NCBI RefSeq assembly: GCF_026571515.1
Contig: NW_026864712.1
Span: forward strand, 124,001-188,000
Source: Ruditapes philippinarum
Lineage: Eukaryota
Length of the DNA stretch: 64,000 nucleotides
Reading direction: 5' to 3'
In this document: positions 31,038 to 58,774 of the stretch, one piece after another
Layout of the letters: every line of letters begins with the position of its first letter
How positions within the stretch are numbered: position 1 is the first letter of the stretch
The notes under the pieces: generated by a model
Told to the model about the DNA's origin: nothing
What the model saw: the letters and a program-made list of their open reading frames with translations, nothing else
Database searches by the model: none
Translations under genes and position numbers: made by a program

Positions 31038-31228
31038 TGTAATATGAGACTGTTTATATAAATGTATACATGCGCATGCTTAGAAAGTAGTCCAACAGTT
31101 CTTGTTAAGAGATTATCTTCAGTATTAAACTTGTAGTCATAGAACACACTTGTGTATCTTATTTCTCATTTGAGTTATACGTTTGTCTACTTGTGATATA
31201 CTCACATACAAAACCACATAACATTACA
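31038..31228 (+). repeat. 5' LTR
   Basis: Identical by eye to 35520-35710. Confidence 0.97.
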
Positions 31229-31316
31229 TGGTGTCAGAAATATTGCTGAATTTTTTAAACATTGGATTAATTATAATAATATAGTTTAACGTGACTTAAA
31301 CTAAACAACAACAACA

Positions 31317-34300
31317 ATGGATCTTAGTGGCATTCCACCACCAGTAATGAACTGGCAGAGCTCAAATTTAATTGAACAGTGGCAAAAATTTAAATTGAAC
31401 GTGGAACTTATATTTTCTGGACCACTTAAATCTAAATCAGAGGAAGAAAAAGTTTCATACTTATTGCTATGGATTGGTGACGAAGGCAGAGAAGTGTACC
31501 GAACATGGGACCTTAGTGCAGAAGACGCCAAGAAGCTAAACACATATTATGTAAAGTATAAAGATCATGTGCAACCAAAACTTAATCCGATATTTGCAAG
31601 ATATCAGTTTATGAACGAGATTCAAGGAAGTGACTCAATTGACGCTTTCGTGACGAGGCTAAGAAACAAAGCCACAGATTGTCAATTCACAGACAAAAAT
31701 GAAAACATCCGAGACAGAATTGTATTTGGATGTAATAGTTCCAAAGTACGTGAAAAACTAATAAATGAAGGCGAAAAATTAACATTAGACAAGGCAATAC
31801 AAATTGCACAAAATTACGAATATTGCCAAAAACAGATGGCAACCATGGGGGCAGCCGCGCAACAACCAATTGACGCTGTTAAGACGCAAAGGCATAATAG
31901 AAGAAAACAATCAGCAAATGGACCCACTAAGACGGGAAGGATGCAAGGACATGGATCACAAAATGTTTGTGGACGTTGTGGCACGCGACATGACCAGAGA
32001 ACAAACTGTCCGGCAAAAGGGGCTACATGCTATAAGTGTAACAAACTGAATCACTTTTCAAAGCAGTGCAAATCACAGAAAAACGCTATAAGTGTCAATC
32101 AAATAGGGGACAATAGTGACATTGAAGAAAACTTGTGCAATGCAGTTGATGGATACTCAATTAATACGGTGAGTACTAGCTTACATTCTCCAGACTGTGT
32201 TAGAACCGAAATTTGTCTTGGCCCAAACAAATGCCCAATATCATTTAAAATTGACACTGGCAGTGCTGCAAACATTCTGCCCAAGCAAAAATTTCAAAAA
32301 CTGAATTTGAGTACCCCACTTGAGGCCCCTGATTGCAAATTAACCTCATATACAGGTGAAGCACTTTCAATCTTGGGAACAGTCATGTTGACTTGTTATT
32401 TAGGAAATCAGTCAATGATTGCAAAGTTTTATGTGGTAGATAGAAATGCATCCCCTCTCTTAGGCTTGCAAACTTCATCAAACCTTGGCCTGATTAAGCT
32501 CACATTTTCTGTGGAACACTCCCTCCCTGACAAGAGTAAAACATTTCTGACCAGAGAAATAGCCATGAAAGAATACAGTGACCTGTTTTCTGGTATTGGA
32601 ACTATTGATGGTCAGTGCAGTTTGCATTTAAAGAAAATATGCAGTACCAACTATTAACCCACCACGTACAATACCCGACGCCTTAAGAGCACGTGTAAAA
32701 TCAGAGCTTGACAGAATGATTAAAGACAAAATAATCACAAAAGTCAATGAGCCTACTGATTGGGTTAATTCCCTTGTCGTTGTAGAAAAGCCCAAAACTG
32801 GGGCATTACGAATATGCCTTGACCCTAAAGCATTAAATGAGGCAATTCGTAGACCGCATTTTCCCATGCCTACTTTAGAAGATATTACATCAAAACTAAA
32901 CGGCGCATCAATTTTCAGTATTCTTGATATAACGCATGCATATTGGAGCTTACAGCTTGACAAACGTTCGTCAATGCTAACTACGTTTAACACGCCGTTC
33001 GGAAGGTATAGATGGCTTAGACTTCCGTTTGGTATATCGGCTTCCGGTGACTTATTTATGCAGAAAATAAGCGAAATTCTCGAAGGACTATCGGGCGTAA
33101 CTGCAATAGTCGACGATATTCTTGTATACGGTCGCACGCAGGAAGAACACGATAAAAATCTAAAGCACGTGCTTGAGCGCGCACGAGAAAAGGGTGTCAA
33201 ATTAAACCCAGATAAATGCAAAATTGGTGTACAAGAAGTACCATTTTTCGGTCATGTAATAAGCAAGGATGGTCTTAAACCAGACCAGTCCAAGGTCAAA
33301 GCTATAAGCGAAATAGGTCTTCCAAATACGAGGCCAAAGTTAGAAACATTTTTAGGTATGATTAATTACCTTGCAAAATTTGCGCCAAATCTCGCGGATG
33401 CGACAGCTCCCCTCAGGAGCCTCTTGAAAAAAGATGTCGAATTCTGCTGGGAAGAGCAACATGATAGAGCATTTCAAAAGGTTAAACACATGATATCTGA
33501 AGCACCTGTGTTAGGTTATTATGACCCGAAAGCACCACTCACATTAGAGTCTGACAGCTCGAAGGACGCAATAGGCACGTGTCTCATACAAAATGGCAGA
33601 CCGATTGCATATGCGTCGAAAAGTTTAACCGAAACTGAAAAGGGTTATGCTCAAATAGAGAAAGAGTTATTAGCCATATTGTATGGTTGTACTCGTTTTC
33701 ATCAGTACACATACGGCAGACATGTGACTGTACACTCAGATCACAAACCAATCGCTGTTATAATCAAAAAACCATTGTCAGCCGCACCACCTAGACTGCA
33801 GAGAATGTTATTACAATTGCAAAAGTACAACATTAAAGTTATCTATGTTCCAGGCATACACATCCCGGTCAGTGATTGCTTATCTCGACAATGTATATCA
33901 GATTCGCAGTCAGAAGTAGTTCAAGGACTTGACACACATGTGCACACTGTATGTAAACAACTCCACTTCACTGATCAAAGATTGCAAAATATCTCAGAAA
34001 TAACAAGCAGTGATAAACAAATGGTCATTTTAAAACAAACAATCATTGAAGGTTTCCCAGAGGAAAGATCAATGTGCCCATCAGATATACTTGAGTTCTG
34101 GAACCATAGGGATGAACTAAGTTATGAAAATGGTCTTATATTTCGAGGTCAAAGAATTGTTATCCCAAAATCACTCCGCTCTGAAATTATAGGTCAAATA
34201 CACACTGGGCATTTTGGTGTAAACAAAACGGTTGAGTGTGGGAAAGAAAATTTCTTTTGGCCCGGCATGATTAAACAAATCACAGAATTTGTTTTACAGT

Positions 34301-35303
34301 GTAGTACTTGTCTCTCGCATCGTAATTCAAATGCAAATGAACCGCTTATATATAAATAAGTCATGAGTTTCCTGATAGACTGTGGCAGAAAATTGGCACA
34401 GACATTTTTACTCATGATGGTAAGAATTACTTGATAACAATTGACTATTATAGTCGATTCTTTGAAATTGACTATTTGCCAGATACTCGATCAAATACCG
34501 TAATACAAAAACTTCGCGCACATATGTCTCGATATGGAATTGTAGATATTTGCATGAGTGATAACGGACCGCAATTTTCGTCAACAGAATTTGCCGAGTT
34601 CGCAAAATCATGGGGATTTACTCACATTACGTCATCACCTTATCAAAGTAGGTCAAATGGAATGGCTGAAAAGGGTGTGTCGATTGCTAAGAAAACCTTA
34701 ACTAAGGCAAAAGAATCTAGGCAAGACCCATATGTATGTATTTTAGAATACAGAAACACACCTTTAGAATGTGGTTACACCCCAAATCAGTTGTTAATGG
34801 GACGAAGGACAAAGTCTGTAGTTCCAATTTCTGAAAAAAGGCTTTAGCCCCAAACAGTTAGTCCATCAGTGGTTAAATAAAAAATGCAGAAAATCAAGTC
34901 ACAACAAAAATATTATTTTGATAAAAACTCAAAAAGTCTAAGTCCACTTCAAGCAAATGACTCAGTTCGTATTCTATTTGGTAAAAAATGGGTACCAGGA
35001 AAGGTTACTTCAAAGAATGGAGAAAGGTCATACAATGTAAAGACACAAAATGGCACAATTTACTGCCGCAATAGGAAATTCCTAATCAAAACCCAAGAAA
35101 ATCAAATAACCGATTTTCTCCCTAATGCACTTGATTCATCGTGCACACAAAAGATCAAATTACCTGATAAAAGTTTCCCACAAAATAGTGACCCTTCTAT
35201 TAACTCTCAACCACTGGCGAACACATGTGGTAATTATGTAACACGGTCTGGTAGAATTGTAAAGCCTAGTACTCGTTATCAGAATGATACTTATCAGAAG
35301 TGA
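31317..35303 (+). pseudogene. gag-pol polyprotein, disrupted
   Basis: Gag CCHC knuckle (CYKCNKLNHFSKQC), protease DTG, RT LPFG...VDDIL, RNase H AYASK...YAQIEKELLA, integrase HHCC and SDNGPQF. Broken by frameshifts at about 32635 and about 34350 and by stops at about 34845 and about 34878. Confidence 0.93.
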
Positions 35304-35519
35304 ACTGACTGATGATTATACATCTGATAAACGATCGTTGTGTAAATAAATAGATTAGTTCGTAATGATTGCTTTTAATTATACTTATATATTAAATAGC
35401 TAAAATAATTTCTAAAACAGATTCAATAATAATGTTTAAACTTTTAAAACATATTTTTTAATATTGAATGTCTGTTTGTTATGATATACAATCAAATGCT
35501 TTTATTAAAAGAAGAGAGA

Positions 35520-35710
35520 TGTAATATGAGACTGTTTATATAAATGTATACATGCGCATGCTTAGAAAGTAGTCCAACAGTTCTTGTTAAGAGATTATCT
35601 TCAGTATTAAACTTGTAGTCATAGAACACACTTGTGTATCTTATTTCTCATTTGAGTTATACGTTTGTCTACTTGTGATATACTCACATACAAAACCACA
35701 TAACATTACA
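35520..35710 (+). repeat. 3' LTR
   Basis: Identical by eye to 31038-31228; followed by the TSD GGGGG. Confidence 0.97.
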
Positions 35711-36940: not shown

Positions 36941-39900
36941 TCAATTCAATTCAATTCAAATTTTATTGCATTTTTCGACAAAACTTTGCCTTTGGCAATA
37001 CATACAAAACATACATAAATCACTTGAAATATGACATACATTCAATACATTCAATACAAATATACAATGTTCACATAAAATGTAGAAACATATCAAATTT
37101 ACAATTCTTGCATTGTTTCTAAAACACTAGATCTTAATGCGAATGCTTTATCTAAAAATTTACATAGTTGCAATATTCTACTTTTATTTCCTGATGACAT
37201 AATAGAATAGAACTTATTTAAAGTTGGAAAAGATACATGTTTTATAAAAGATTTTCTCAGTTCTGAATATAAGGGACAACATAATAAGAAGTGGTATTCT
37301 GATTCAACATATTTATACGGGCATAATTTACACAATCTGTTATTTCTATCAGTTCTCATATATCTACCTGTTTCTATTTCTAAGGAATGAGAACATAATC
37401 TAAAACATGATACTAGTAATTGTTTACGTAAATTGTCATTTTTTACAAAATTAAGATATTCCTCTATATTTCTTATAGTAGTCAAGCTTTGGCATATTAT
37501 CTATACAGTCATGTCACTGTTGTAAAAATTGATCTCTTATTCTCTGCTTAAATATCATATTATAATTGACATTAACTGCATAGTTATAAATAATGTACGG
37601 GAAGCCCATATCAGTAATAACAGAGTGAACGCGTTTAGCCCAGCTTTTATCATTCCCATTAATACATTGGTCTAAATAAATATGGTATATAGGCGCCTGC
37701 TGACGCTTAACGATTTTATTCCAAAATTGTAAAGCTCTTTCCGTACATAGAACAGACAAAGGAAATTTACCTAGTTCCCCATAGATAGCACAATTTGGGG
37801 TCTGTCTTTTGACACCTAAAACATATTTATAAAATCTTATCTGTAGTTTATCAATATCTTTCAGCTTATATATACCCCAAACCTCTGACCCGTATAACAA
37901 GATTAGAGCTACCATCCTTTCAAATAAGTATAATTTTGTTTTAACATCGAATTTAACTCTATCAAAGAGTGCGAGAAGATTGTGGTAAGCTCTTAGTCCT
38001 TGATCTGATAGTGCTTTCACAGCTTCAACAAAACTACCTGTGTAAGAAAATTTCACTCCTAAATATGTAAAACTATCTACTTTTTCAACCAATTGACCAT
38101 TTATAAATATATTAAAATTATGGACTGACTTACGTTTTTCAAATACACATATTTTAGTTTTATTAACATTTATCTTCAAACCCCATTTACATGAATATTC
38201 AAAAACATTATCAACTTGTGCCTGCAAGCTTGCAGGGTCAGTTGTAAACAACACAATATCATCCGCAAAAAGTAACAAATATTTAGATAAAAGGTTTAGG
38301 TCGTTGTTAGACAGTTTGTTAAGATCTATACACTGATCAATATCATTAAGGAATAAAATAAACAGCAAGGGAGATAATGGCTTGCCTTGTTTTAAGCCTA
38401 GAGTTACCTAAAAAAAAACAGAAAAAAATGATTTAGAATCAATTTTGACACAAGATGATACAGAAGAGTAAATGGATTTTAACATAGTAACCATTTTACA
38501 GCTAACGCCATTTTCAATCAATTTAATCCACAATGCATCTCTTATTACAGTATCAAACGTTTTTTCATAATCTATGAAAATACAATATAGTTTTGATGTG
38601 TTGTCAAGTATCTTCTGGATAAGGGAATGTAGAATAAAAATAGCGTCAGCTGTAGATCTAGAATCTCTAAAAATCGTAAATCGTTAAAAATTTGTTCTAA
38701 TTCACACCATTTATTTAACCTATTACGTAGTACTAAGGAAATATTTTTGCCATACAATTTACTAACGTGATGCCACGGTAATTTGAAGGATTTTCGGGAT
38801 CACCTTTCTTATAAATAGGTACAATTACCCCTTTACACCATGCTTCTGGGTAAATGCCAGTCTCAAAGATTTTATTGAAAATAGTACACAAATATGGGCT
38901 TATAAATATATTAGCATCAATGAAAAAGTCAGCAACAATATTTAAATAATCAGCACTCTTATTTCTATTCAACGAAGATATATAATTTCTTTCGTTTGAG
39001 GAACGAATTAATTAGAAGGAAATTATTTTCCCTTAAGGTAACGTAGTCATCGTCAGGATATTTAGTAAAGCGTGACATGAGTGCACGATATTTTCGTGCA
39101 GTATTTCAGTCTAAGTTCATTCAGCTTTGGGTAACCGACCGGTTTACATCGTTTAATTTTTTATTTCTTTTTCAAAAATAGAAAGTAGATAATTATGAAT
39201 AAAATATGTTTCATTCATAGGTAGAGTGTGAACAGATATGCATTTGTAAATTTGTAAAATGGCGTCAAAGTGTTTTCTTTAATGTAGTACTTAAACATTA
39301 TTGTGTGATATAAAATATGAATTATTGTATGAATTGTATGTACCATCGGTTACCCAAGTGCTTCGGTTACAAATTACAATTTGAATTTGAAAGTAAGACT
39401 GAGTTGTGTTTTTATTTGTCTGATGTGACGTAGTAGATTGAGGGACACTTCCTCCACACTGATCGGACAATCTAACTGTTCAATATATAACGGTGCATCA
39501 CGTGACTGAATAAAATCGTCTGCAGCTGCAAATTAGAGATATTTGAAAAAATGGTTAACAAAACTATCTGAATCTAAGTTGTTTCTATCAGACGGGCTAC
39601 GTTTGAATTTATTTATGTATTTCCAAAACTTACGCGGTGAGGTTTTTGACATTTGTGACATATTAATTTTTTCTTTAGAGTAAAATATCGCTTTTGCTCG
39701 TCTCTTAACCGTTATATATTCCCGTCTACTTGACAAGAATAACAACTTATTATCATTACACTTATTTGCATAAAAGGCTCTTTTTTATTATGAAAATCTG
39801 CTTTAGCATTTCTGCAATTCACATTAAACCAGGCAGCTTTTTTTAACCTTTTTACATGGCTTTTGACAAAATGTTTTCCCAAAGCACTTAAAAGAGATTT

Positions 39901-42110: not shown

Positions 42111-44807
42111 TATATTATGCCTAAAGCGACATTTAACGTAGCTTCGAATTTCAGTTTTGTTCCATTGTACAATACGGTCAGAAAATTGGTCTACAACATA
42201 CTCAGGTGTACCATGCCATGGATTAGAACAGAACGATCAAAGGTCATACAGCCGCAATATGACGCAAATTATCAAAACATAATGCATGCATAACACAGTG
42301 CCAGGGTTCGTTAGCAAGACTAAATTTCTCTGTGACAATTAAGTGTAATATTCAGTTGACTTATACCGTGGATTAAGCAATGGCGTTGATAAGTAGTCGG
42401 CCACTAGTAAACGTGTGATATTAGTGATTTGTGAATGTTATTTTTCTGTTTGTTTGTTTGTTATAACCAGTTGCATATTATATGCCTTGGTTTAATAAAA
42501 ACTGAAACTGGTATTAAAGTGACATTATGGTCACATTTTCATAGTCAAGTTGATCTGAATTAACAATTTATTACAATAAATTGACTGTTTTAACGGTGAT
42601 TGACAAACGCTTGGTATTGAAAAATGTTTAGGATAAAATATAAATCAGCCCAAAATACTGTCTTTTATAAAATCCTTTCCTGTGTTTATACGGAGGTTAT
42701 CATGGAACCTTCAATGTGACAGAGGTGCCATACCATGAAAAGCGGCGTATGGTCCCCAAGTAAAAGAATGGTTGTGCCCTAAACGAGAAAACAATGGGTG
42801 GAACTAAATAAAATGTAATTATGAAGCGGATCTGAGGTTATGAAGCCTGCATATCACAGATAAGACGTCAAAAGACAAATTTAAAAAGCAGACAACATAT
42901 CCTTAGGGTGATTTTACAGTGTTAAAGTAGGAATGCTGGAACCACCCAGTTGAAAATGGCCAAAAAGAAGAAACTAAAAGTACCACATAACATGTGTACG
43001 AAACTTGATAAGAGCAGAGAATTATTGATTAAAATATGTGTTCGTATAGAGGAATCGAACAATTAACTTCGGGCATACGGATCTCTGTATGAAATATGAG
43101 CATTAGCAACAGCCATGAGATCATCATGATAGACTTTAATCTAGACATTCGCAAACTGATTAAGGTCAAGGTTATATTTGAATTACTTAACATGTCGATT
43201 TTGTTATAACAATTATTTTGTCTAAGTTTAAACTAAATCCATAATTAAATAACAATGTTATGGCCTATTGTAGCAAAAATCACTTATATGACGTTATTAG
43301 GCAGTTCATTTATATAAAAACAAAGTTATAACTAATTATAGAATATATCAAACAAAATTAGAAAAAAAAATAACCGTGAAGGTCAAGGTCATTTATCATT
43401 CAAGGTCACGGTCAATCGAGTCTAATTGGGGTTTGTCAAAGGATTTTGTGTTCGAAAAGATGGAGCAAGAATTATACCTTTAATAAGAATAGTGTTTGAC
43501 TCGTGATATTTCACGGTCGGTGGCGAAAATTTTCCTGAATATAAATATATTAAAGTGACCTTTTGTTCATTTTTCATTGTCATGTTGAGCGAAATAAATT
43601 ATCCAATTGAAAGGAATTATGAAGAGAAGAAGAAGAAATAGTTTATTTCGGTAACTTATACATTTACAGTATCTCGTTACATACGATTATTTTGGCAAAA
43701 CTTTAACTTATCTTGATTTTCATCTGGTCGCTCTATATATACATTCTACCATTTGATGACATATAATGTCACTTTTATAAGACTCATGTCAATATTACCA
43801 GATCATGATAATATGATTAATATTTAGGTTTCTAGGTGTTTCGGGACCGAAAGCTTGCCGCCCGATAAATCTATAATTAAATTTTGTAATCTATCTATTA
43901 AAATTTAAGGTGGAATGCAAGCGTATCGAAACATCTAATTTTCAATTCTAAAAATACATTTTACATTATCTTAGTTCACTATTTTTAGTTTTCAAAGCTT
44001 CCCCTTATCTAAACCTATTACAAGTGTTCAAAATATAAAAGCATTCTTTTTCAAATAATGATAAACATTCTTGTTAAAAGAAGAGATTAAACTTAATAAT
44101 TGCTTAAACGTTAAAACGGTTATAACTGCGACCTGAGCTTATACATTTTAAACTCTTTTAGAAAAAGTCAAGGCCGCGATGAAAAATGAATGAAAGATGC
44201 TTTTATGAGAGAAATTTTCATTTTCAGTCATCGTCAATGAAAAAGGAAGTAAACACATCATATATTTTTACTTCCACTTAAGTTATTACGTGTTCTTTTT
44301 CCACTGAAAATAAAATACTATACATATGTAAAATAATAAGGAAAGTTTTAATCATAGTCTGACTATAGATATGTTATATGTGGCAATTACTGTTAAGTTC
44401 ATAATATAAAATTAAATTGTTCTAAATTATATTAATTCGTATAATAAGTCAGGATAGAAAACGCATTTGATTTTATTATAAACAGAATGAAATCAATCAA
44501 GTGCGATTAAACAAGATTTATTGAACATACTGTACTTAAACAAAATCAATCTGTGATATTGATAATTCATTTATACAAAGTTAAAGAGAAAAACATTTGC
44601 TGTTAAAAATTAAAATAATTGTGATGATAAATATGATATACATGTAGTAACACATTTACATGAAACAACATATAAAAAAATACAAAATTAAGCATGGAAT
44701 GGATAGATTACAAAATGTATATATAAAACAGGTACATGTATTTGTAAAAAAATGTAAAACATTCTTAACTTTTTAACACAAATTTATTCAGAGTGATTTT
44801 GTTAATA

Positions 44808-45893
44808 TCATTTTGATTTCCACATTAGATACATTGCTGCTAGCCCAAGACCTATCTTAACAGCACTCCATAAGCTTTCACCCATTGTTGGTTCCGGTAC
44901 AGCGTCTGGTTTAAAAGGTCTTCGGGGCTTAGACTCGTGCCGAACAGACGGAGTATCATTTCTTGAGTACAATATATTCTCAACTTTACGAGCTTCATCA
45001 TCATTTGTATAATGCCAATTAGTTGAAGATCTGGTTGGTTGCTGAACGCGGACCGAATGCCGATTGTTTACTAATTTTCCATAGCAGTACCCACCCGGTT
45101 GTCCTCTAACATTTACTTCTTTTCCACCACATTTTGTTGTAAGTCTGGCTGCATCAATTGTCTTACTTACATTAGCGGTAATGTAACGACATTTACCTAA
45201 CTTCTCTAGTTGACGAAATACCCAAAGTCGGCGGTTGTCCCAAGAAAACCATTGGCCATTCACTAGTGCTACAGATATACGTTTTATATCTGACACAGAC
45301 AACCTAAAATAAACCAGAGTTTCAAAATATATAGAATATAATTATATATATTCATGAAATCTTATAATATGTAGTAGTTGTATTTATGAAATCTTTTCAT
45401 TATAATGATGATACATTTGAAAGACATTTTTAAGAATAAAGATTCTTTTCACTAATGTTAAGTTATTTTGGGCTGAAACGAAGCTAAGTAATTAGTATTT
45501 AAAGCGAAATAAATGTACATGTACATTTAATGTATGACATTTTAAAGTTAAACTAAACTGCATTGTTAAAAATCAACATGGACCTCCTTTTTGGATTATA
45601 AGAGTACAGATAGACTTATTTTAAGGCACGTGACGGCAGACATGGCGACTTGCCAGCTTCACTTACGAATATCAAGATACTAACCAGGAACGGTAGTAGG
45701 ATTCGAACCCAACCCGATTAGCTGCAAGTAATTCTATCAGTTACCCTAACAGCCTTATGATGACCAAACGTATTTACCTGTCTTCATACAGATCGTCCAA
45801 GGTTTCACCAATTAGTTTACCTGTTGTCGAAAAACGGCAGCTTATACTATCTTGTGAAAAATAAATATCAGATGGCTTTAACTGTGTTATCAT
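44808..45893 (-). CDS. ParB/Srx-like domain protein with a C-terminal tail anchor, paralog A1 (203 aa, 2 exons)
   Basis: Exon 1 45778-45893 (MITQLKPSDIYFSQDSISCRFSTTGKLIGETLDDLYED-R), phase-2 GT-AG intron, exon 2 44808-45303 (LSVSDIKRISVALVNGQWFSWDNRRLWVF...TTKCGGKEVNVRG...SLWSAVKIGLGLAAMYLMWKSK*). The structure is conserved in 4 paralogs. The domain call is from motif recognition. Confidence 0.85.
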
Positions 45894-46387
45894 GTTTAAT
45901 TTGCATGTATATATATATCTTTAAGTAAATTGTTATCCAACGTGTAATAATGTTAATTATTTCTTAAAACTCAAAGGTTTGGCGACATTTAATTATAACG
46001 TTCCATTGCTATTTCCATGAAGAATTATCCTTTTTTTAATCCTTAAGCCAAAATGTCTCCTACTTTTTTATCACAGTTGACATCTAATTAGAACATTTTA
46101 TATACGCTGATACAATTTTCGAGAAACTAAAACGAAACCAACTGCGTTTTCCGAAAATTGCAAGTACTGTAGCTATTTATAAAATCGATGTTATACATCT
46201 CTCCTCTAATCATACAGGCAATGTGTGTTTGATAACCTTGGCATACAGCTTAATGTGTAACGATAGTGCATAAAGCTATGCATGTATGTCTATCGTCTAA
46301 TTATTTTTCAGTTTTGGAAAAAGAATACTTCCAATAGAATAATTGTTAACAATATAATGTGTCGATGACCTGAGAGTATACTTCTAG

Positions 46388-46399
46388 TGTGTGTGTGCG

Positions 46400-46431
<32 letters not shown>

Positions 46432-46468
46432 TGTGTGCGCGTGTGCGTGTGTGCGTGCGTGCGTGCGT
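46388..46468. repeat. (TG)n/(TGCG)n microsatellite
   Basis: Directly visible; shorter counterpart at about 57170-57200. Confidence 0.9.
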
Positions 46469-47386
46469 TTGAAAGCTTTTGCTTGGAGCAAAATATATTG
46501 CTGTTTATAATAAATTGAAACTGCTGTTTATTTAAACACAAATCATGCATATCAAATGAAAATGAATTTAAAAAATACCTATGTAATTGATAGTTCTTAC
46601 TTAAAATAGTGACGGGGTCTGATTCAGAAAAGAACAATACACTTGTGATACTTATCTTTATAACCCATATTATTACATTTATTCCGAAGTAACATTATTG
46701 AATGACATAACACTTATTGTTTAAAAATTAATATAAACTAAATAAAACATCATTAGAAAGATGATTTAATTGTAAAATAACTTATAGATGAAGTGGAGAC
46801 AACTTTAATCAGACAAGTTGTTTATTGCATTATGAAATCGACTTATTGTAGACTAATTGACAAAGTTTTTTATGAACTTCATTATAAACGAGGTATGTAC
46901 AAAATATTTCTTGGACATGATAATCTTGGTTGATATGAATCGAAATGTTGTCTTATTTCTAAGTGTGTTTTACTTTTATTGAAAATCTTTATTACTATTT
47001 GCACTTTAATAACCATGGCAACTCGTATATAAAGAATTCATAGTGTTTGAAAGACTCTGTTGCTCTTTATAACTTTGAAAATGAAAATATAATGTTACGT
47101 ACACCTCTTGTGAACTGCTATAAACAGATTACATAGAAGATGTGAAAAAATGTATGATTGCATCACTAGTAAAAATAAAATTGAAGGAAACAAGAAGGAA
47201 ATCAAACTTCAGAGTTTCCGGTAATTAGAAGATATTTTTTAATGAATTTATAAGGAAAAAATATGGGACTTTTAAATATCGTCCGGATTTCAGAGGACTC
47301 CGGTTTTCAGAGGTTTTACTGAAGTTTAATTTGAATACAGCAAACCATTTCATGTCATGTCTTCATTTTGCAGACGAACCTATTAA

Positions 47387-48131
47387 GGTATTAGGACCCT
47401 AATGGGCACTATCAGGAACTAAAGAATTGACATCATAGGTCATATGTATACCTTAAAGTACACCTGTATGCAAAATTTACACAAAGTTTACCGTACGGAA
47501 ATCAAGTTATGGCCACTTTTCTGAACTCAAGCTAGGATGTTATGAGGGCCCTTTTTTGAAATGAGGAACCTTTAAATAATCTGCAATAACATTCTAATGA
47601 AAAATGTTTTCCCATGAATTTTTGGTAAGAAACAAAAAGTACCATTCAGCTAACATTCCACATAAGCAAAATTATGGTTTCTTCTTAAAATTTATGAAAT
47701 CTTTATAAAAATGTTACCCTACCCCACCCATTTTTACATCATGTCTGACCATTTTTCTACTTAGGGAGCCTAATTCAAAAAATTCTTAAAATTTACCCAA
47801 ATGAGTGCCTGTTTTCAAAGTTTCCCTAAATTTTAAAAAAAGTATATTGGTTGATCTTGTAAAATATGAAATACTTTTACCGTCTAGTTTTGATTACATT
47901 ACACTTTGAAAATATCAGGTTCCATATTTATTACTAGATTTAGCATATATAATTTAGCCAATAAATACTTATATAGATTAAAAATTCAAAATTAAACACA
48001 AAATTAAAGAAAAAAAAGTTGACCCTCCTGGGGATTGAACCCATGGCCCTCATTTTCAATGTAGCTAACAGTAATTCTAGCCTATTTGAATACTCTTCAA
48101 AGCGGAGGTAATGCATTAGGGTGCTAATATC
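47387..48131. mobile_element. TTAA-flanked MITE (Kolobok-like)
   Basis: TIR GGTATTAGGACCCTAATG / CATTAGGGTGCTAATATC with TTAA on both sides. Purine termini favour Kolobok over piggyBac. Confidence 0.75.
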
Positions 48132-49900
48132 TTAAGTTATAAGTTATTAAGAGAACGTGCCGTTAAAAAGCACACGAATTAGTTTAAGACAAATCACAAA
48201 CAAATCGTTTTAGCAAGAGGCCGTTCTAATTACAATAAGCGTTTTCTTTCTCGGTTAGTGTTAAAAAAATAACTTTCACAAATGAAACAATTGAAAACGT
48301 TATGAATCATTTCAGCCCATTCAACAAACTGTCCTTTTAGCGCTTCCCAAGTGTCAACAAAACAATTGCCCCGATGCCAATAACCTTTGCAGCCGTCCAG
48401 AGAAACGAAGATGAACTCTGTGAATGCCATCGGCCACCAGGGTCACCTCTCACATCTACATTACGTCCTCCGCATTTAATGGTCATGTGATACTGGGGCA
48501 TAGATACCATACTGTTTACTGGAATTCTTTTACATTTGCCAAGCCTTTCGAGGTGACGAAATACCCATAATCTTCTGTTATTCTGTGTGATCCACCGACC
48601 ATTTACTTTGGTTACAGAAATTGGATCAATGTCTGATACATTGAGCCTGTAAAAAGTTAACCGAATAATATTGATGAATTGTCTGAAAATTAAACTATTT
48701 ATGTCATGTATATATATATACAAGGTAAGAACCATATTCTTCTTTATTCAGTTGTAAAACACTGCCTGCCATTTTGATGTTCGTCTGAGAAATGACAGCG
48801 CTGATGTTGTATTGAGAAAAACATATTTCTGTTACTCTGTGATATAGTTGTGTAGTTGTAAAGTCGTTATAAACTTCAACCTCTTTATGAATTAAATAAA
48901 TAAATTAAACAAGAGGGTCATTATAGCCCTGAGTCGCTCACCAGAAACATGTTGGAAATTATAATTCAAAATAACTTGCTGAAAGGCAAGTCCAGCCCTT
49001 TCAGCAAGTTCAGCTCAACTTTAACTTGCCCCTCTAGTAATGTACTTTCACAACACTGATTGTTTTAGCTTTATTTCTTCATAATAAACAACAGGGCCGC
49101 TAAGATGGCCCTTGATCACTCATCTAACCCACCTTTCTTTATTCACTCTATAAATTGAAATATTTTGCCCTAAAAGTTTGGAAAGGCGTTATTAAAAATA
49201 TGCTATTGCAAGTGTGTTCCTATGAGACTATGTAGAATATATGCAAAATAAATTACCACTAGAGCAGGATTAATTTTGACTGGACAATTTTTTTATAACT
49301 TTTTTGAATGAAAGCACAAAATGTCACATGCAAAACATGTAAGGTGTAGATGTTTAAAGTTTACAGTTTGGGACAACAAATTATTTATACATTCTGTATG
49401 GTAACATAACTGTACCTCAAAAAAAGACAATAAGTCAAATATTGTAAAAAATATGAAAGGAAGGCCAGTTGAGATTAAATTCAATTCACCATCAGAAATT
49501 ACACCCCTAGTCCAAATTTTAATTTTGTATGTCGAAATACACAAGAATGAAGGTCAAATTATATCAAAAATAGCAAAAGTAGTTCAGTTGATATCAAAAT
49601 TCAGAATTTATAAACCTGGTCCAAATTTAAAATCTGAATGTCAAAATACAAAAAAGAAGGTCAAATGCTGTCAATAATACCTTAAGTAAGTCAGCTGGTA
49701 TCAAATTGAATTCAACATCAAAACACAAATTACACCCCTGGTCCAAATTTCAAGTCTGTACCTAAAAGACAAAAAAAGTAGGTAAAATTATATAAAATAT
49801 ATCAAAAGTAGGCCAGTTCATATCAAAATTCAGGATAAGAAATTAAACCCCTTGTCCAAATTTCCAGCAGGTACATCAATCAAAGCACAGAAGGCGCTGA

Positions 49901-51346
49901 ATTTGTTTGGGTCTCAGAATGTAAGAAAGGTGCAGGTTGTGAGATTATATGTTTAGTGCCACCAATGCTTTCCAGCGTTTTAATTGTAGTAAATTGGCTA
50001 TAAGACTAATTGCAACACTGATATTCAATCCAATGTTTATTTGACTTTAACAATTTAAAAAAATGAGTTCAGGGTAAACCTGTTGTTTAAAATTGAAGTA
50101 AATATTACTGGGATTTGAACTCCAGACCTCTCGCTTCCTAAGCGAGCCCGAAAACCCTTCAGCCACGGTTAAATTTATATGTGAACGGCCTGAAGAAAAC
50201 CTTATTATTCTAAATTAGGGCTTGTAACGACTTTTAACTGTTGTTTAACACAGATGTAAATAATCCTAAAGCTTACTATAAGCATGTATATTTATAAAGA
50301 ATCAAAGGGCTTCAAGTTCTTTGTTTGCAATCTAAATCGTACTGTATATCTGTATGCATTTTCCTGTATAAGTTTATTTTTATGTATTATAATTCATTTT
50401 GTAAGGCACATACGGAATTCTGCATAACTAGAGTTGCATCAAAAATCATTTATGTACTTTTTTTACGACAGCCACACTTTATCCTTGTAAATCATGGCTA
50501 CTTCCTTAACAAAAACAATTAAAAAAAGAATTTAACAAAAAAAAAATTTCCTCGACTGGGATTCGAACTCGAGACCTCTCACTCACTAAGCGAGCGCGTT
50601 ACCACTGTACCACGGAGAAGTTATACACAGAATGTCTGAATAATATCAAGTCATTCTAAATTTAGAACTTCCATTGCATTCAGGAATCCTTATTAATTTC
50701 GAGGTTTTTTGTTCAGGGTAAACCTGTTGTTTAAAATTGAAGTAAATATTTTAGCGAAAATCCTCTCGCCCAAACAGTCCGACATGTAGAATCTATATAT
50801 TCCACTACTCGGTTTGTGTAGTATTCGGTAATCTACATGGCTAAAAATAGTATTTTCATTGATAAAATCATATTCATCCGCGTAATTTGTGATTGTGCAT
50901 TTATTGACAATTCTATAAGCCAACGCTATTGTTTAACTTTAAATGCGTTGTAATTTGTTGGATACTTGTAACCAAATAAAATATTTCTTTCTTTTTAATC
51001 GCTAGTTTTAAGCTGTTTTGAGAACTACTTGTTGTTAGGTTTGTCATAAACTTCTGTGTCAGAGATTGAATGTCCGCTTTGTATTTAGTTATTTTCGATC
51101 AGAAAATACCAGAAAACAATATTAGAAATCTTCGACCATTCGGGAATTACTTTGCTTGAAAATTGATGCGCCTGTCTTTGACCATCTTTACGCAGTGATC
51201 TCCCCTGAATTTTTCGGCTTTAGTGTACATACAAAAGGGAAGTAACCGCTTCAAAAAAGTGGACTACTTTCGGCATTTGCAATTAAGAACATTAGACTCT
51301 GAAATTTCGCTACCATTATTTGTTTGGTCTGACGACCCAAACAAAT
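49901..51346. mobile_element. TIR element nested in the HINE, carrying tRNA-like segments
   Basis: ATTTGTTTGGGTC(G)TCAGA / TCTGACGACCCAAACAAAT; reverse tRNA-like B-box segments at about 50108-50170 and 50550-50615. Confidence 0.6.
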
Positions 51347-52279
51347 AAAAAACGACAAACTAGGTCAAACAATATCAAATAATTATATCAAAAGTAGTCA
51401 GTAGATATCTTAATTCAATTCGCATCAGAAAATACATTCCTGGTCCAAATTTCAAGTCTCTGTACATCAAAACAAGAAAGTACGTGCAATGGTTTCAAAT
51501 ATATCAAAAACAGCTCAAGTGGTGCCAAAATTCAAGTATGCACATGAAACTCAGGTTGAACAGTATGTCCCAAAATCTATTAAAATGTGCTTTCTCCAAG
51601 TTTAAATCCAATTCAACAAAAATTGAAAAAAAATACAATTTTTAACAATACAACATTCAATAAAATAATTGAGCATACAAAACCATCTTGGTTAAACACA
51701 TGTGATGTTTCTTTAGCCTGATTTTTTTCCTGGTTAATGACCTACACCTGACCTTACAATTATGCAATATGATTTCATAAGTCTTGAGCTGAGAGATATT
51801 TACACATCATAAACATGTCATGACATTAAGACTTTCATGTATGTACATGTACACATTCCAACATGAGTTATTTCCCTTTCATTATGAAAAGATATCCTTT
51901 GATAGAAATTTATTGAAATTTATGAATTTCTTACTGAAAATGTTAAATTTGGATAAAAGAATGAATAAACTATGTATGGGAAGCTGCATATCCTATTATA
52001 GGCCAAGTAAAGCTGGTCTTTTCTATATATATATATAAAAAAAAACATTTTTTAATGACACTATCATTATATTTATACCGTGACCACCTATAGTGTGGAG
52101 AGTTTAAAACATAACAAAAATCTACTTTGTGTGAAGTCAAAACACGTTTATTTGATATTAATAAAGAGACTGTGTATCCATTGTCAATATTTTCTTATAT
52201 TAAATTTGAGCATAGAATATCTTTTATTTGAAGAAATGCCTTGACCTTGCATGGCATTTAAGCTTAAGCTTAAACAGGG

Positions 52280-52900
52280 CCAATCAAATAAATATAAGCA
52301 AACTTGATAAAAGACTACCTAAGAATGCTTCAGACAAAGTTTGGTGATCATCCATCAAATATTTCAGTAGGAGATGATGTTCAAAGGTTTTTCTATATTT
52401 AGCTTTAGCGGTCCCTTAAAGGGGCCAATCAATTTAATATGAAAAAACGTGATAAAAGACTACTTAAGAATGCTACCGACAAAGTTTGGTGATCATACAT
52501 CAATTAGTTCTATAGAAGAAGATGTCTAAAGGTATTTCTATTTTAGCTTTAGCGGCCCCTTAAAGGGGCCAATCAAATTAATATGAAAAAAAACCTAATA
52601 AAAGACTACCTAAGAATGCTACAGACAAAGTTTGGTGATTTCAGTAGGAAATGATGTACAAAGTTCTACCTACTTTTAGCTGCTTTGGAGGCCCCAAAAA
52701 GGGGCCAATCAAATTAATATGAGCAAACTTGATAAAAAGACTACACAAGAATGCTACAGACAAAGTTTGGTGATCATCCATCTTTCAGTTCTGTAGTAGA
52801 AGATGTTTAAAGGTTTTTCTATTGTTAGCTCTGTTGACTCCTAAGAGGGGCCAATTAAAGTGACATGGGCAAATTTAAGTGTGACTGTCACAAGGATGCT
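52280..52900 (+). repeat. About 140-bp tandem repeat (4-5 units) inside the HINE
   Basis: Recurrent AAAAGACTACCTAAGAATGCT...AAAGTTTGGTGATCATCC...GGGGCCAATCAAAT. Confidence 0.85.
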
Positions 52901-53559
52901 ACAGACCAAATTTTAGGTAAATCTGCCCAGTAGTTCTGTAGATTATTGACGTATGACGACGGACTACGGACGCCGGAGTATCCCCCTTTGATACTAATAG
53001 CTCATTCTGAGCCTTCGGCTCTGGTGAGCTAATAAATGAATGAATGAATGAATGAATGAATGAATGAACAAATGAATGACTGAATTGCATTGTTGTGACT
53101 GGCCTTCTTTGTTAATATAGAATAAAAGAACTCCGATAGTGTTAGAATGCTAAACAATGAACTTAGTCATGTCATGTATACATACTAAGTTAAACTTTAA
53201 ACTGAACACATTTTGTCCTCATCCTAATATTACAAGTTATAAAACTTACCTGCCCTCACATAATTCGTCAAGGGTCTCACCAATTAGATTTCCGTCGGAC
53301 AAATGACAACTAATGCTGTCTTGTGAATACTATATTTCTGACGGATATAATTGCAAAGCCATTATAGAAACTTTAATCTTTAATAACACTGTTTCAAAGA
53401 ATATAATTATAATCTGAGAATCTGTTTAGTCTCTCCTATTTAAACAATGTTATAACTTCATATATTGAAATGTTACAAAGTACAGCGATATCATTACACT
53501 ATTATAGTATCCATACAATATATGATGACGTAGATATCATAGCCAATATACATGTAGCA

Positions 53560-53975
53560 GCCTCTTAAATACCAAATAGTGATTAGTTCAGAAGAAGAAG
53601 TTTAAGGATTTTTTATTTTTAGCTTTAGCAACTCAAAAAGAGACCAATCAAATTAATATGAGCAAATTTAATAAAAGACTACCTATAAAATGCTTCAAAC
53701 AAAGTTTGGCGATCATCCAACAATTACTTTAGTAGAAGAAGACGTTTACGGGTTTTCCTATTTTTAGCTCTCTTGAACCCTTAAAGGTGCCAATTGAAAT
53801 AATATACACACATAAAAGTGTGACTGTTACAAGGATAGTACCGATTAAAGTTGATGTAAATCTGCTCAGCAGTAAAATAGAAGAAAATGGATCTTGACGC
53901 ATGACGACTGATGCCGGAGCATCCCCCTTTGATACTAATAGCTCACCCTGAATCTTCGTTTCTGAGAGTGAGCTA
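53560..53975 (+). mobile_element. HINE 3' fragment at the duplication junction
   Basis: Same 140-bp unit and same 3' end (CCCCTTTGATACTAATAGCTCA...GTGAGCTAA) as 52640-53033. Confidence 0.75.
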
Positions 53976-55527
53976 AAAATATTATAATTTTGGACGGTAA
54001 CAGATAGGGGGCGGGCAACATCGAAAAGATGGAGCAAGAATCATACCTTAAATAAGAATATAGTGTTTGACTCAATGATATTTCACGGTCGGTGGCGAAA
54101 ATCTTCCTGAATATAAATATATATTTAAGTATCCTTTTGTTCATTTTTCATTGTCATTTTTAGCTCACATGACTACATATTTCAAAAGATTGATTGTTAT
54201 AATGGTGATTGACCATCAGCTGATATTTGAAAATGTTTAGTATTAAATATAGATCTGCTAAAATATAAAAAGGCTGCTAAACTATTTTAACAGGTTATTT
54301 TCGATGGAAACTTATAGAAGTTATTTTGGTCAACGTGACTTATTTATCGTTCAAGCGAAATAAATTATCCAATTGAAAGGACTTATGAAGAGAAGAAAAA
54401 GAAATAGTTTACTTCAGTAACCTATACATTTACAGTATCTTGTTACATACAATAATTATGGCAAAACTTTATTTTATCTAGATTTTCACCTGTTTGCTCT
54501 ATATATACATTGTACCATTGGATGACATATTATGTCACTTTTATAAGACTCATGTCAATATTACCAGATCATGATAAAATGGTTAATATTTAGGTTTCTA
54601 GGTGTTTCGGCTTGTCGCGCGATAAATCTATCATTTAATTTTGTAATCTATCTATTAAATTTAAGGTGGAACGTTATCTTAGTTCACTTTTTTTTTAGTT
54701 TTCAAAGCTTCCCCTTATCTAAACTTATTACAAGTGTTCAAAACATAAAAGCACACTGTTTCACATAATGATAAACATTCTTGTTAAAAAAGAAAATAAA
54801 CTAACTTATTGCTAAAATGTTAATAACGGTTATAACTGCGACCTGAGCTTCTACATTTTAAACCATTTTAGAAGAAGTCAAGGCCGCGATGAGAGATGAA
54901 TGAAAGATAATTTTATGACACAAATTTTCATTTTCAGTCATCTTCAATGAAAAAGGAAGACACCCATTTAAAACCGTAGACACATCATATATTTCTACCA
55001 CCACTTAAGTTATTAAGTGTTCTTTTTCCACTGAAAAGAAAATACTATACATATGTAAAAAAATAAGGAAAGTAAGTTTAAATCATAGTCTGACTATAGA
55101 TAAGTTATACATGTGTGTGGCAATTACTGTTGAGTTCATGATTTAAAATTTATTTGTACAATAAATCAGGTTAGAAAACGCATTTGATTTTATTATAAAA
55201 AAAGAATGAAATCAATAAAGTGCGATAAAACAAGATAAGATTTATTGAACATACCGAAACAAAATCCATCTGTGATATTGATAATACATTTATACAAAGT
55301 CAAAGAGCAAAACATATGCTGTTAAAAATTGAAATAATTGTGATGATAAATATGATATACATGTAGTAACACATGTACATGAAACAACATAGAAAAAACT
55401 TACAAAATAAAACAAGGCATGAAAAGATTGTATATAGAACAGGTAAATGTACATGTCGTATTTGTAAACAATTGTAAAACATTCTTAACTTTTTAACAAA
55501 AATTTATTCAGAGTGATTTTGTTAAAA

Positions 55528-56614
55528 TCATTTTGATTTCCAGAATAGATACATTGCTGCTAGCCCAAGACCTATCTTTACAGCACTCCATAAACTTTCA
55601 CCCATTGTAGGTGTTTGTTCCGGTACAGCGTCTGGTTTAAAAGTTCTTCGTGGCTTAGACTCGTGCCGAACAGACGGAGTATCATTTCTTGAGTACAATA
55701 TATCCTCAATTTTATCAGCTTCATCATCTTTTGTATTATGCCAATTAGTTGAAGACCTCCTGGTTGGTTGCTGAACGCGGACCGAATGCCGATTGTTTAC
55801 TAATTTTCCATAGCAGTACCCACCCGGTTGTCCCCTAACATTTACTTCTTTTCCACCACATTTTGTTGTAAGTCTGGCGGCATCAATTGTCTTACTTACA
55901 TTAACGGTAATGTAACGACATTTACCTAACTTCTCTAGTTGACGAAATACCCAAAGTCGGCGGTTGTCCCAAGAAAACCATTGGCCATTCACTAGTGCTA
56001 CAGATATACGTTTTATATCTGACACAGACAACCTAAAATAAACCAGAGTTTCAAAATATATAGAATATAATTATATATATTCATGAAATCTTATAATATG
56101 TAGTATTTGTATTTATGAAATCTTTTCATTATAATGACGATACATTTGAAAGACATTTTTAAGAATAAAGATTCTTTTTACTTATGTTAAGTTATTTTGG
56201 GCTTAAACGAAGCTAATTAATTAGTATTTAATGCAAAATAAATGTAGATCTACATGTACATTTAATGTATGACATTTCAAAGTTAAACTAAACCGTATTG
56301 TTAAAAATCAACATGGACCTCCTTTTTGGATAATAAGAGTACAGATAGACTTATTTCAAGGTACGTGACGGCAGACATGGCGACTTGCCAGCTTTACATA
56401 CTAACCAGGAACGGTAGTAGGATTCGAACCCAACCCGATTAGCTGCAAGTAATTCTATCAGTTACCCTAACAGCCTTATGATGACCAAACGTATTTACCT
56501 GTCTTCATACAGATCGTCCAAGGTTTCACCAATTAGTTTACCTGTTGTCGAAAAACGGCAGCTTATACTATCTTGTGAAAAATAAATTTCAGATGGCTTT
56601 AACTGTGTTATCAT
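55528..56614 (-). CDS. ParB/Srx-like domain protein with a C-terminal tail anchor, paralog A2 (206 aa, 2 exons)
   Basis: Exon 1 56499-56614, exon 2 55528-56032; open frame, phase-2 GT-AG intron; nearly identical to A1 in the core domain. Confidence 0.85.
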
Positions 56615-57713
56615 GTTTAAGGTGCACGTATATATATATATATCTTTAAGTAAATTGTTATCCAACGTGTAATAATTATAATTATTTCTTAAAAGTCAAA
56701 GGGTAGACGACCTTTAATTATAACGCTCCATTGCTATTTCCATGAAATAATGTCCTATGTTTAATCCTTAAGCCAAAATGTCTCCTTCTTTTTAGAAATC
56801 TCGCACTTGTATATCTTAATCACAATTGACATCTAACTAGAACATTTTATATACGCTGATACAATTTTCGAGAAACTAAAACGAAACCAACTGCGTTTTC
56901 CGAAAATTGCAAGTAGTAGCTGTTTACATGCAGAAGTTATAAAATCGATGTAATACATCTCTCCTCTGTCTCGCTGTCTGAATCATACAGGCAATGTGTG
57001 TTTGATAAACTTGGCATACAGCTTAATGTGCAACAATAGTGCATAAAGCTATGCATGTATGTCTGTCATCTAATTAATTTTCACTTTTGGAAAAGAATAC
57101 TTCCAAAATACCTTTATGATAGAATAATTGTTATCAATATAATTTGTCGATGACTTGAGTTTACTTCTAGTGTGTGTGTGTGCGTGTGTGCGTGCGTGCA
57201 CGTCCGTTTGAAAGCTTTTGCTACTGCTGTTAATAATAAATTGAAACCGCTGTTTATTGAAACACAAAACATGCATATCAAATGAAAATGAATTAAAAAA
57301 TACCTATGTAATTGATAGTTCTTACTTAAAATAGTGACGGGATCTGATTCAGAAAAGAACAATACACTTGTGAGACATATCTTTCTAACCCATATTATTA
57401 CATTTATTCCGAAATAACATTATTTAATGACATTACTCTTATTGTTTAAAAATTAATATATATTAAATAAAACATCACCAGGAAGATGATTTAATTGTAA
57501 AGATAACTTATAGATGAAGTGAATACAACTTTATTTAGAGGAATTTTCTATTGCATTATGAAATCGACTTCTTGTAGAGTAATTGACAATTTTTTTTATA
57601 AATTTCACTATATACGAGGTATGTTCAAAACTTTTCTTGGACTTCTGCTGTGTATAATGACAAACTTGGTTGATATGAATCGGAATGTTGTCTTTATTTC
57701 TAAAAGTGTCCTT

Positions 57714-58612
57714 TTAGCGCTTCCCGAGTGTCAACAAAACAATGGCCCCGATGCCAATAACCTTTGCAGCCGTCCAGAGGAACGAGGAGGAACTCTGTGA
57801 ATGCCATCGACCACCAGGGTCACCTCCCACATCTACATTACGTGCTCCGCGTTTAGATGTCATGTAATACTAGGGCATTGAAACCATATTGTTTACTGGA
57901 ATTCTTTTACATTTGCCGAATCTTTCTAGGTGACGAAATGCCCATAATCTTCTGTTACTCTGTGTGATCCACCGACCATTTACTTTGGTTACAGAAATCG
58001 GATCAATGTCTGATACATTGAGCCTGCAAAAAGTTAACCGAATAATGTGGATGAATTGTCTGAAAATTAAACTTTTTATGTCATGTATATATACAAGGTA
58101 AGAACCAATTTCCTCTTTATTCAGTTGTAAAACACTGCCTGCCAGTTTGATGTTCGTCTGAGAAATGACAGCGCTGATGCTGTATTGAGAATAACATATT
58201 TCTGTTATTCTGTGATATAGTTGTGTAGTTGTAAAGTCGTTATAAACTTCAATCTCTAAATGAATTAAATAAATAAATAAAATGAATGAATGAATGAATG
58301 AATGAATGAATGACTGAATGAATGAATGAATGAATTGCATTGTTGTGACTGGCCTTCTTTGTTAATACAGAATAAAAGAACTCCGATAGTGTTAGAATGC
58401 TAAATAACGAATTTAGTCATGTCATGTTAACATACGAAGTTAAAATTTAAATTGAACAAATTTTGTCTTCATCCTAATATGATAAGTAATAAAACTTACC
58501 TTCCCTCACATAATTCGTCAAGAGTCTCGCCAATTAGATTTCCGCCGGAGAAATGACAGCTAATGCTTTCTTGTGAATAAAATATTTCTGACGGATAAAG
58601 TTGTAAAGCCAT
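57714..58612 (-). pseudogene. ParB/Srx-like paralog B2; premature TAG in exon 2 removes the C-terminal motif and tail anchor
   Basis: Exon 1 58500-58612 is intact (MALQLYPSEIFYSQESISCHFSGGNLIGETLDELCEG-R). Exon 2 57714-58023 has TAG at 57870-57872 where B1 has CAG; the frame continues to ...LLTLGKR*. Confidence 0.8.
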
Positions 58613-58774
58613 TATAGAAACTTTAATCTTTAATAAAACTGTTTCAAAGAATATAATTATAATCTGAGAATCTGTTTAGTCTTTCCTATTTGCACAATGT
58701 TATAACTTCATATAAAGAAATGTAACAAAGTACAGCGATATCATTAAACTATCTAAAGAGGTTCAAAGTTTACC

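Follow-up and report, generated by a model that had tools for sequence, protein, structure and literature searches.

A cluster of four related two-exon genes on the minus strand of the clam Ruditapes philippinarum (positions 44808-58612 of the window described here) is best explained as part of a host-gene family that has expanded in bivalves, and whose members combine a domain homologous to bacterial toxin tips with a membrane anchor and would act as anchored effectors. We put the probability of this explanation as a whole at roughly 0.7. The window, on which the coordinates are based, is the stretch of 64,000 nt at positions 124,001-188,000 of contig NW_026864712.1 (assembly GCF_026571515.1); it is AT-rich, with a GC content of ~30%, and contains zero N. 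The firmest part of the explanation, which we consider very probable, is the identity of the genes together with their homology to the toxin tips at the C-termini of polymorphic toxins, of the RHS and ALF-repeat types, in bacteria.

The four copies (A1, A2, B1 and B2) all have their intron in phase 2, with an exon 1 donor of the form ..AG/GTAAGT or ..AG/GTAAAT and an exon 2 acceptor ..AG/G. In A1, the coding part of exon 1 (45778-45893, from M1 through the second base of codon 39) bears the PSDIYFSQDSIS and LIGETLD motifs, and the 5' untranslated region reaches at least 46200 in transcript contigs. This exon is defined by sequence, RefSeq identity and transcript coverage. The GT..AG intron that follows (45304-45777, 474 nt) is defined by a junction in contigs and in one raw read, and exon 2 with its stop codon (44808-45303) by sequence and by the secondary structure and confidence (pLDDT, predicted local distance difference test) of an AlphaFold2 model. 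Exon 2 carries the rest of the ParB-like domain to ~45075, including the DNRRL motif (45225-45239), then a low-confidence linker, a tail-anchor helix (residues 184-201 of 203, at 44817-44870), the residues KSK and the stop. The exons of the other copies, also on the minus strand, are assigned from sequence. For A2 they lie at 56499-56614 and 55528-56032 (stop included), giving an intact protein of 206 aa that is RefSeq LOC132726596. B1 has exon 1 at 53250-53362 and an open exon 2 at 48337-48646 that ends in a tail-anchor helix followed by GKR, while B2 has an open exon 1 at 58500-58612 and its exon 2 at 57714-58023.

The first-pass annotation of this sequence, which was made from the letters alone, had described four two-exon paralogs with a common phase-2 intron. 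All four are present over this span, but B1 carries an in-frame TAG at codon 11 (53332..53330; TTT at the same position in B2) and B2 carries one in exon 2 (57872..57870; CAG in B1), so that only A1 (203 aa) and A2 are intact among the copies in the window. The conserved core quoted for the four copies is likewise present, but the A copies read LYEDR in place of ..GR, and B2, past its stop, reads KRGA for KCGG and VGG for VRG.

The spliced A1 model is letter-for-letter identical to the RefSeq protein XP_060567913.1 (P0001, LOC132726595). This protein was found through the search with exon 2; the exons were searched one by one, and later searches and folding used the database protein. Because of this identity, and because the family has 2767 cluster representatives, the four paralogs are not a chance pattern. 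The B copies were not among the R. philippinarum proteins returned by the protein searches.

Splicing of A1 was followed by read mapping over 44600-46200 with two contig sets (X1 and X3) and two raw RNA-seq runs. Many R. philippinarum runs contain roughly half of the words sampled from the A1 locus, which equals the exon share of the locus. The mapped sequences contain a junction that skips 474 nt with plus-strand ends CT..AC; with the cut offset by 2 bases to the right, it corresponds to 45778/45303 and to GT..AG on the minus strand, the very junction that had been proposed beforehand. It is seen in contigs of X1 (depth 43.7) and X3 (depth 165.9) and in one raw RNA-seq read of run X23. Exon and intron depths are 43.7 against 5.6 in one case and 166 against 0-4.6 in the other, and both raw RNA runs cover the exons. 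The X1 and X3 sets are RNA only by guess, so that the junction has little direct support from RNA; the contigs agree with the RefSeq model. A1 is a host gene that is spliced and expressed. In encoding, splicing and expressing an interbacterial toxin domain, the clam genome resembles that of ticks, whose dae amidases are reportedly bacterial antagonism genes domesticated in animals (work said to be that of Chou and colleagues, 2015); the dae enzymes differ in fold and chemistry, and are reportedly secreted, whereas the clam proteins are predicted to be exposed to the cytosol at a membrane. That the genes are contamination by bacteria, or an artefact of annotation, would account for the bacterial homology and for nothing else; this reading is refuted by the spliceosomal intron in transcripts, by the 40 or more loci that the genome holds and by the orthologues in many bivalves. 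The ~30% GC and the flanking clam repeats and retrotransposons argue in the same direction, and the probability left to this explanation is negligible.

The AlphaFold2 model of P0001, run with an alignment of 42 mollusc sequences, has block-mean pLDDT values of 91-98 over residues 1-110, then a low-confidence linker and the terminal helix of residues 184-201. Within the confident region, strands 48-53 and 56-59 are followed by a helix (62-73) that opens at DNRR. The motif starts a helix after a β-hairpin, which is the position of GERR in ParB and of GCHR in sulfiredoxin (Srx). Among the Foldseek matches listed, nearly all have the ParB/Srx fold (ParB, Noc, KorB, sulfiredoxin, SbnI, free serine kinase and PadC); ParB-family CTPases score best (6sdk, which is ParB-CDP, at E 1.8e-3; 7bnr, which is ParB-CTPγS; and 7ol9), and sulfiredoxin (6ky4) is also among the matches. 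VIA-align, which is independent of Foldseek, was run against 48,161 chains, and its top ten are again all of the ParB/Srx fold, with Z scores of 7.6-3.5: Atu1540 (7.6), sulfiredoxin 6ky4 (7.1), serine kinase (6.0), KorB (5.9), sulfiredoxin 1yzs (5.8), SbnI (5.8), PadC (5.5), pNOB8 ParB-N (5.2), Osa (4.0) and Spo0J (3.5). We accept the fold because these structural matches are unanimous, and not on the strength of single scores. Model, Foldseek and VIA-align agree with the fold that the first-pass annotation had proposed, and the N-terminal ~115 residues are, as modelled, a ParB/sulfiredoxin-fold domain.

Residues G29, L32, D33 and D61-N62-R63-R64-L65-W66 are invariant in the 42 mollusc sequences, and P7, S8, Q14, I17, F21 and G99 are nearly so. 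In the [FY][ST]Q motif, the Gln is invariant or nearly invariant in both the mollusc and the bacterial sets, and is preceded by Ser or Thr. The bacterial set (seven tips) shows no variation at Q, D, N, R and R, and N62, R63 and R64 are shared with the 42 mollusc sequences. The candidate active site is made up of S13, Q14, D61, N62, R63 and R64. The domain shares its core fold with the ParB CTPases (Spo0J/ParB, Noc and KorB), and also the placement of a basic motif at a helix N-terminus (DNRR versus GERRxRA). The clam proteins differ from these in that they are eukaryotic and membrane-anchored, and have no helix-turn-helix (HTH), no C-terminal dimerisation domain and no detectable profile similarity. 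Sulfiredoxin, an ATP-using enzyme of eukaryotes with the ParB fold, has the same fold as the clam domain (Z 7.1 and 5.8 for the two entries above). However, the catalytic Cys of FGGCHR is missing and the clam position reads W-D-N-R-R, which rules out identification as a sulfiredoxin; that GCHR is absent had been recognised at the outset.

Bacterial relatives were found by a scan of one genome per bacterial species, and in plasmids, metagenomes and IMG/VR. The scan located one on a contig of a Chthonomonadales metagenome-assembled genome (L001), whose first open reading frame (ORF) has an RHS core (TIGR03696 Rhs_assc_core, E 4.7e-19) that ends in ..DPSGL. Directly after this core comes a C-terminal tip that aligns end to end with the clam domain and contains YSQNSI, SLDNRRLW and GGTRIKIRG. 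The same domain forms the C-terminus of an ALF-repeat protein on a metagenome contig (L002), and tblastn against plasmids locates the tip in Haliovirga, Sinorhizobium, Streptomyces and Bacillus toyonensis. The Haliovirga and B. toyonensis tips (L058 and L059) come after DPxGH ends of RHS cores (..VDPSGH and ..TDPDGH) and sit in cassette arrays beside RHS and AHH toxin genes. An orphan tip on an IMG/VR contig (L072) has the end TTNNGGITIRVRGR, the motif already named in the first-pass annotation. Comparison of the mollusc profile with the seven bacterial tips by hhalign gives a probability of 99.65% (E 5.2e-25, 105 columns). A word-indexed search with the L002 tip returned three mollusc matches, which are weak, the search being limited by its length window. 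The motifs [FY][ST]Q.SI, SLDNRRL and TTNNGG.TIRVRG, which the first-pass annotation had given for the tips of RHS and other polymorphic toxins, are indeed present in these bacterial homologues.

The ORF after the L001 tip, which overlaps the RHS ORF by ATGA, encodes a DUF7660 protein (E 7.8e-12), and DUF7660 is also next after the Haliovirga and Bacillus tips (E 6e-28 and 1e-26). It is therefore found directly downstream of the tip in Armatimonadota, Fusobacteriota and Bacillota (L001:699-1019, L058:6316-6564 and L059:6321-6572). A model of the complex between the L001 tip and its DUF7660 neighbour scores 0.81, with the best of three controls at 0.00; the mark for such models is reached by 51 of 78 solved complexes and by 2 of 108 mismatched pairs. 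Contact agreement between runs is at least 97%, and the partner has a pLDDT of at least 87. The model supports, rather than shows, binding of the L001 tip to its neighbour. In it, the C-terminal residue of DUF7660 contacts Q12, I15, D58, N59 and R60 of the tip, so that DUF7660 is modelled to cover the conserved SQ/DNRR pocket, which lends model-level support to the pocket as the active site. DUF7660 is probably the cognate immunity protein of the ParB-like toxin tip; we found no paper that mentions DUF7660 next to such tips.

A published family resembles the clam domain closely. Zhang et al. 2012 (PMC3482391) describe Tox-ParBL1 as a predicted ParB fold with a conserved N-terminal Ser/Thr, and with [NT][RT][RT] replacing DGHHR. 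They place it at the tips of RHS, filamentous-haemagglutinin, MafB and WXG/LXG toxins, and also in "several metazoans", plants, fungi, kinetoplastids and others, with Imm-SUKH and Imm44 as its immunity partners. In that paper, ParBL1 is regarded as an acquisition separate from sulfiredoxin, and is suggested to have been absorbed into core eukaryotic functions. The clam domain appears to fit Tox-ParBL1, the comparison being with the published description and not an alignment with the type protein (NGK_2271, N. gonorrhoeae). The features in common are the ParB fold, the N-terminal Ser/Thr, N62-R63-R64, occurrence at RHS-toxin C-termini (for the bacterial homologues) and occurrence in metazoans. 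The differences are that the immunity partner seen here is DUF7660 rather than Imm-SUKH or Imm44, and that the clam proteins are stand-alone. The first-pass annotation knew of no characterised animal family of this kind; the family is indeed uncharacterised, but it was described computationally, metazoan members included, in 2012. In the literature on ParBL1, ParB-like toxins, DUF7660 and the LOC identifiers, we found no paper beyond that of Zhang et al. 2012, in which neither the bivalve expansion nor the intron nor the tail-anchor/CaaX architecture is described. New here are the extent of the expansion in bivalves, with no fewer than 40 loci in the R. philippinarum genome, the C-terminal tail anchors or CaaX boxes and the lack of signal peptides.

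The family is large. A profile search of 1.84 billion representatives gives 2767 at E≤1e-3, of which 292 remain at E≤1e-30. Word-indexed searches returned 44 proteins, of which all those with a named source are from bivalves or the chiton Liolophura, and in the ten clusters that were looked up all named members are bivalve proteins; the ESM Atlas matches are all unnamed Mollusca clusters. The R. philippinarum genome has 64 exon-level matches on ~20 contigs, which correspond to at least 40 loci. Among these are intronless copies within ORFs of 400-600 aa, loci with domains in tandem, and several loci with stops. Members of the two-exon subfamily have their intron in common, at profile position 44. 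Birth-and-death evolution, as had been anticipated from the cluster, is borne out by the pseudogenised B copies, the number of loci and the stops at other loci. An expansion of this sort in bivalves, with copies still being gained and lost, is what would mark a family driven by conflict.

In a tree of ~110 columns, from which the B copies of the window were left out, P0001 (Ruditapes A) groups with P0003, and P0004 with the Ruditapes protein P0005; P0001 and three other venerid clam proteins make up one small group. P0003, P0004 and P0006, which are A-like and B-like relatives, are on one Mercenaria chromosome. A phylogeny with the bacterial tips had been proposed along with the idea of a bacterial origin; the tree splits five bacterial tips from the other sequences (SH-aLRT 95), but with only ~110 columns it gives neither the donor nor the direction of transfer. 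Three further observations concern relatives of these genes. Tandem pairs of ParB-like domains occur in some family members (L070, at G000:C3940:71000-74000, and P0007 and P0027), the second domain being the more divergent (DGNRRL / DNRKLW). Moss-associated metagenome contigs (L018-L053) hold a distinct low-GC eukaryotic clade of the domain (RFTQ.DIA..F ... WSLDNRRLWVFRKA). P0065, a Mactra antiquata protein of 784 aa annotated as Heat shock 70 kDa protein 12A, has an HSP70 match after its ParB-like domain; this fusion may be real, or may be a merged gene model or other artefact.

At the C-termini of A1, A2, B1 and B2, basic residues come after a hydrophobic helix; none of the four has a signal peptide, and A1, B1 and B2 have no hydrophobic segment at the N-terminus. 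In the A1 model, residue 122 is followed only by low-confidence, probably disordered sequence and the one terminal helix. With a single hydrophobic helix no more than ~30 residues from the C-terminus and no signal peptide, A1, B1 and B2 are predicted tail-anchored proteins. Hydrophobic C-terminal helices are found in 34 of 179 relatives, and a further type of ending, a CaaX-like box, in 22 of 179, mostly as C-x-I-L and often with another Cys before it; a hydrophobic N-terminus occurs in only 4 of 179. Mollusc-like metagenome copies have the same kinds of C-terminal end. A C-terminal anchor in a protein that has no signal peptide places the domain, as predicted, at a membrane and on its cytosolic side. 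A secreted toxin of an antimicrobial or venom-like kind would be in keeping with homology to bacterial toxins that are delivered to their targets, but the lack of signal peptides in A1, A2 and B, the rarity of hydrophobic N-termini and the cytosolic exposure implied by a tail anchor or CaaX box all tell against it. We have rejected this alternative, whose chances we rate as slight in the extreme.

The history of the cluster is one of tandem duplication of an A-B unit, as is evident from self-BLAST of the window. The A-bearing block of the duplication has its first copy at 43588-46962, which is ~88% identical to 54354-57703; further matching pairs are 48326-48909 with 57703-58282 and 53031-53502 with 58281-58752. 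Between the introns of A1 and A2 the identity is 96.7%. The B1 intron is extended to ~4.6 kb by a 4.1-kb insertion (48909-53031) that B2 does not have; this insertion contains tandem repeats at 52269-52855 and a (CATT)n-type microsatellite, which reads FIHSFIHS in translation and is also present in the B2 and B3 introns. B3 is a fifth copy that the whole-genome search located on the same contig, 400-1200 bp past the window end (L061:588-1418, equivalent to contig C13199 188387-189217). It is open, with the same intron phase, has NNRR for DNRR and ends in CSIC, which is CaaX-like, with no tail-anchor helix. Its intron holds a partial duplicate of the exon 1 donor region.

In all three B copies, N or S replaces the invariant Asp (D61) of DNRR, which the Mercenaria B-like protein P0004 retains. 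Pairwise comparison gives dS 0.24 and dN/dS (the ratio of nonsynonymous to synonymous rates) 0.19 for B1/B2, dS 0.58 and dN/dS 0.19 for B1/B3, and dS 0.44 and dN/dS 0.27 for B2/B3. These values imply that the B copies were constrained for most of their history, and that the stops are recent or polymorphic. As read from its sequences, with the invariant Asp lost and stops in two of three copies, the B lineage in R. philippinarum is either decaying or turned non-catalytic.

That B copies lacking the invariant Asp should nevertheless have a dN/dS of 0.19, that A and B are always adjacent, that the window is rich in transposable elements and that intronless copies exist elsewhere in the genome would suit a selfish element, spread by transposons or maintained as a toxin-antidote drive in which the altered B copies serve as antidotes to A. 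Yet two of the three B copies are broken, and A-like and B-like genes share one Mercenaria chromosome, so that the cluster may be old. No transposase, reverse transcriptase or terminal repeats accompany the A-B unit; transposon cargo is rejected on this ground, and the selfish alternative overall is very improbable.

In the mechanism that we propose for these anchored effectors, the intact protein would consist of the ~115-residue ParB/Srx domain, a probably disordered linker and the C-terminal membrane anchor, with the domain facing the cytosol. ParB binds the phosphates of CTP with its Arg-rich motif, and phosphoryl transfer by sulfiredoxin, SerK and SbnI draws on ATP. On this analogy, [ST]-Q and D-N-R-R would form the phosphate-binding pocket for a nucleoside triphosphate, like GERR and GCHR in ParB and sulfiredoxin, and the domain would catalyse either hydrolysis or the transfer of a phosphoryl or nucleotidyl group to a target near the membrane. 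This pocket and its chemistry are put forward tentatively, at somewhat below even odds. A role as a cell-autonomous conflict or immune effector, present in many copies that turn over fast, is suggested by the dynamics of the family and by its ancestry; it is the weakest step, because no partner domains and no protector gene were found, and we regard it as possible but doubtful. The fullest version, in which an RHS toxin tip has been turned into cytosolic, membrane-tethered, nucleotide-dependent effectors of bivalve immunity or regulated cell death, with the Asp-less B paralogs as non-catalytic regulators, is more doubtful again.

The main competitor is a non-toxic, nucleotide-gated switch or adaptor that works at membranes in ordinary organelle or membrane biology; in the manner of ParB, Noc and KorB, it would take up a nucleotide (CTP) and in response alter its conformation or associate with itself. 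Noc engages membranes using CTP, which parallels the C-terminal anchors of the clam proteins, and the nearest solved folds include the CTP-switch proteins ParB, Noc and KorB. Purifying selection would also agree with such a role, as would the suggestion of uptake into core eukaryotic functions (Zhang et al. 2012, PMC3482391). However, housekeeping genes rarely exist as dozens of lineage-specific copies that duplicate fast and become pseudogenes, the nearest relatives in sequence are toxin tips with immunity genes rather than ParB clamps, and the HTH and dimerisation domains are absent. We consider this switch unlikely, though well ahead of the other alternatives.

Several results weigh against the preferred explanation, that of toxin-related, anchored effectors. 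Pfam has no family for either exon or for P0001-P0003 at E≤10, NCBIfam has no match to P0001, and a profile search of PDB sequences gave only noise, with no ParB or Srx chain. The structural matches are moderate when taken singly (Foldseek E ~1e-3, Z below 8), and the fold assignment rests on a predicted model. Constraint is seen for A1/A2 as well, with a dN/dS of 0.44 (dS 0.053), but this value is based on only 18 substitutions. In the ten long relatives examined with Pfam there are no immune or death-fold partner domains, the sole match being the HSP70-like one of P0065. A search of the clam genome for a DUF7660-like protector gave none, a weak negative since the 14 control genomes also gave none; with no protector found, a toxic activity in the host cytosol would need another safeguard. 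Finally, we found no report of a biochemical activity for any Tox-ParBL1 member, bacterial or eukaryotic.

The remainder of the window contains elements of several other kinds. A long terminal repeat (LTR) retrotransposon at 31038-35710 has 191-bp LTRs that are 100% identical (31038-31228 and 35520-35710), a gag ORF with a zinc knuckle, and Ty3/gypsy-type reverse transcriptase, RNaseH and integrase across three ORFs. There are also a reverse-transcriptase fragment at 37514-38368 (minus strand) and a fragment of a mariner-type (DDE) transposase at 15421-15825 (plus strand). A satellite-like tandem-repeat array occupies 2894-4260, with units that are 76-84% identical, and a short related array lies 8 kb away at 12531-12776.

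Tox-ParBL1 is widespread as a toxin domain, and its eukaryotic homologues have been the subject of a one-line remark since 2012. The cluster provides a tractable, expressed animal member of this kind, whose domain is cleanly bounded and confidently modelled and has a candidate active site, and the bacterial toxin-immunity pair is available as a matched comparison for the clam domain. As a by-product, DUF7660 gains a predicted function, that of an immunity protein which would plug the Arg pocket of the toxin. The recurrent tail or prenyl anchor predicts where the bivalve proteins would act. If the fullest version of the explanation is true, with its part in immunity or cell death, these genes would constitute the first eukaryotic family of ParB-fold enzymes with a role in conflict, and would offer a route to the chemistry of Tox-ParBL1.

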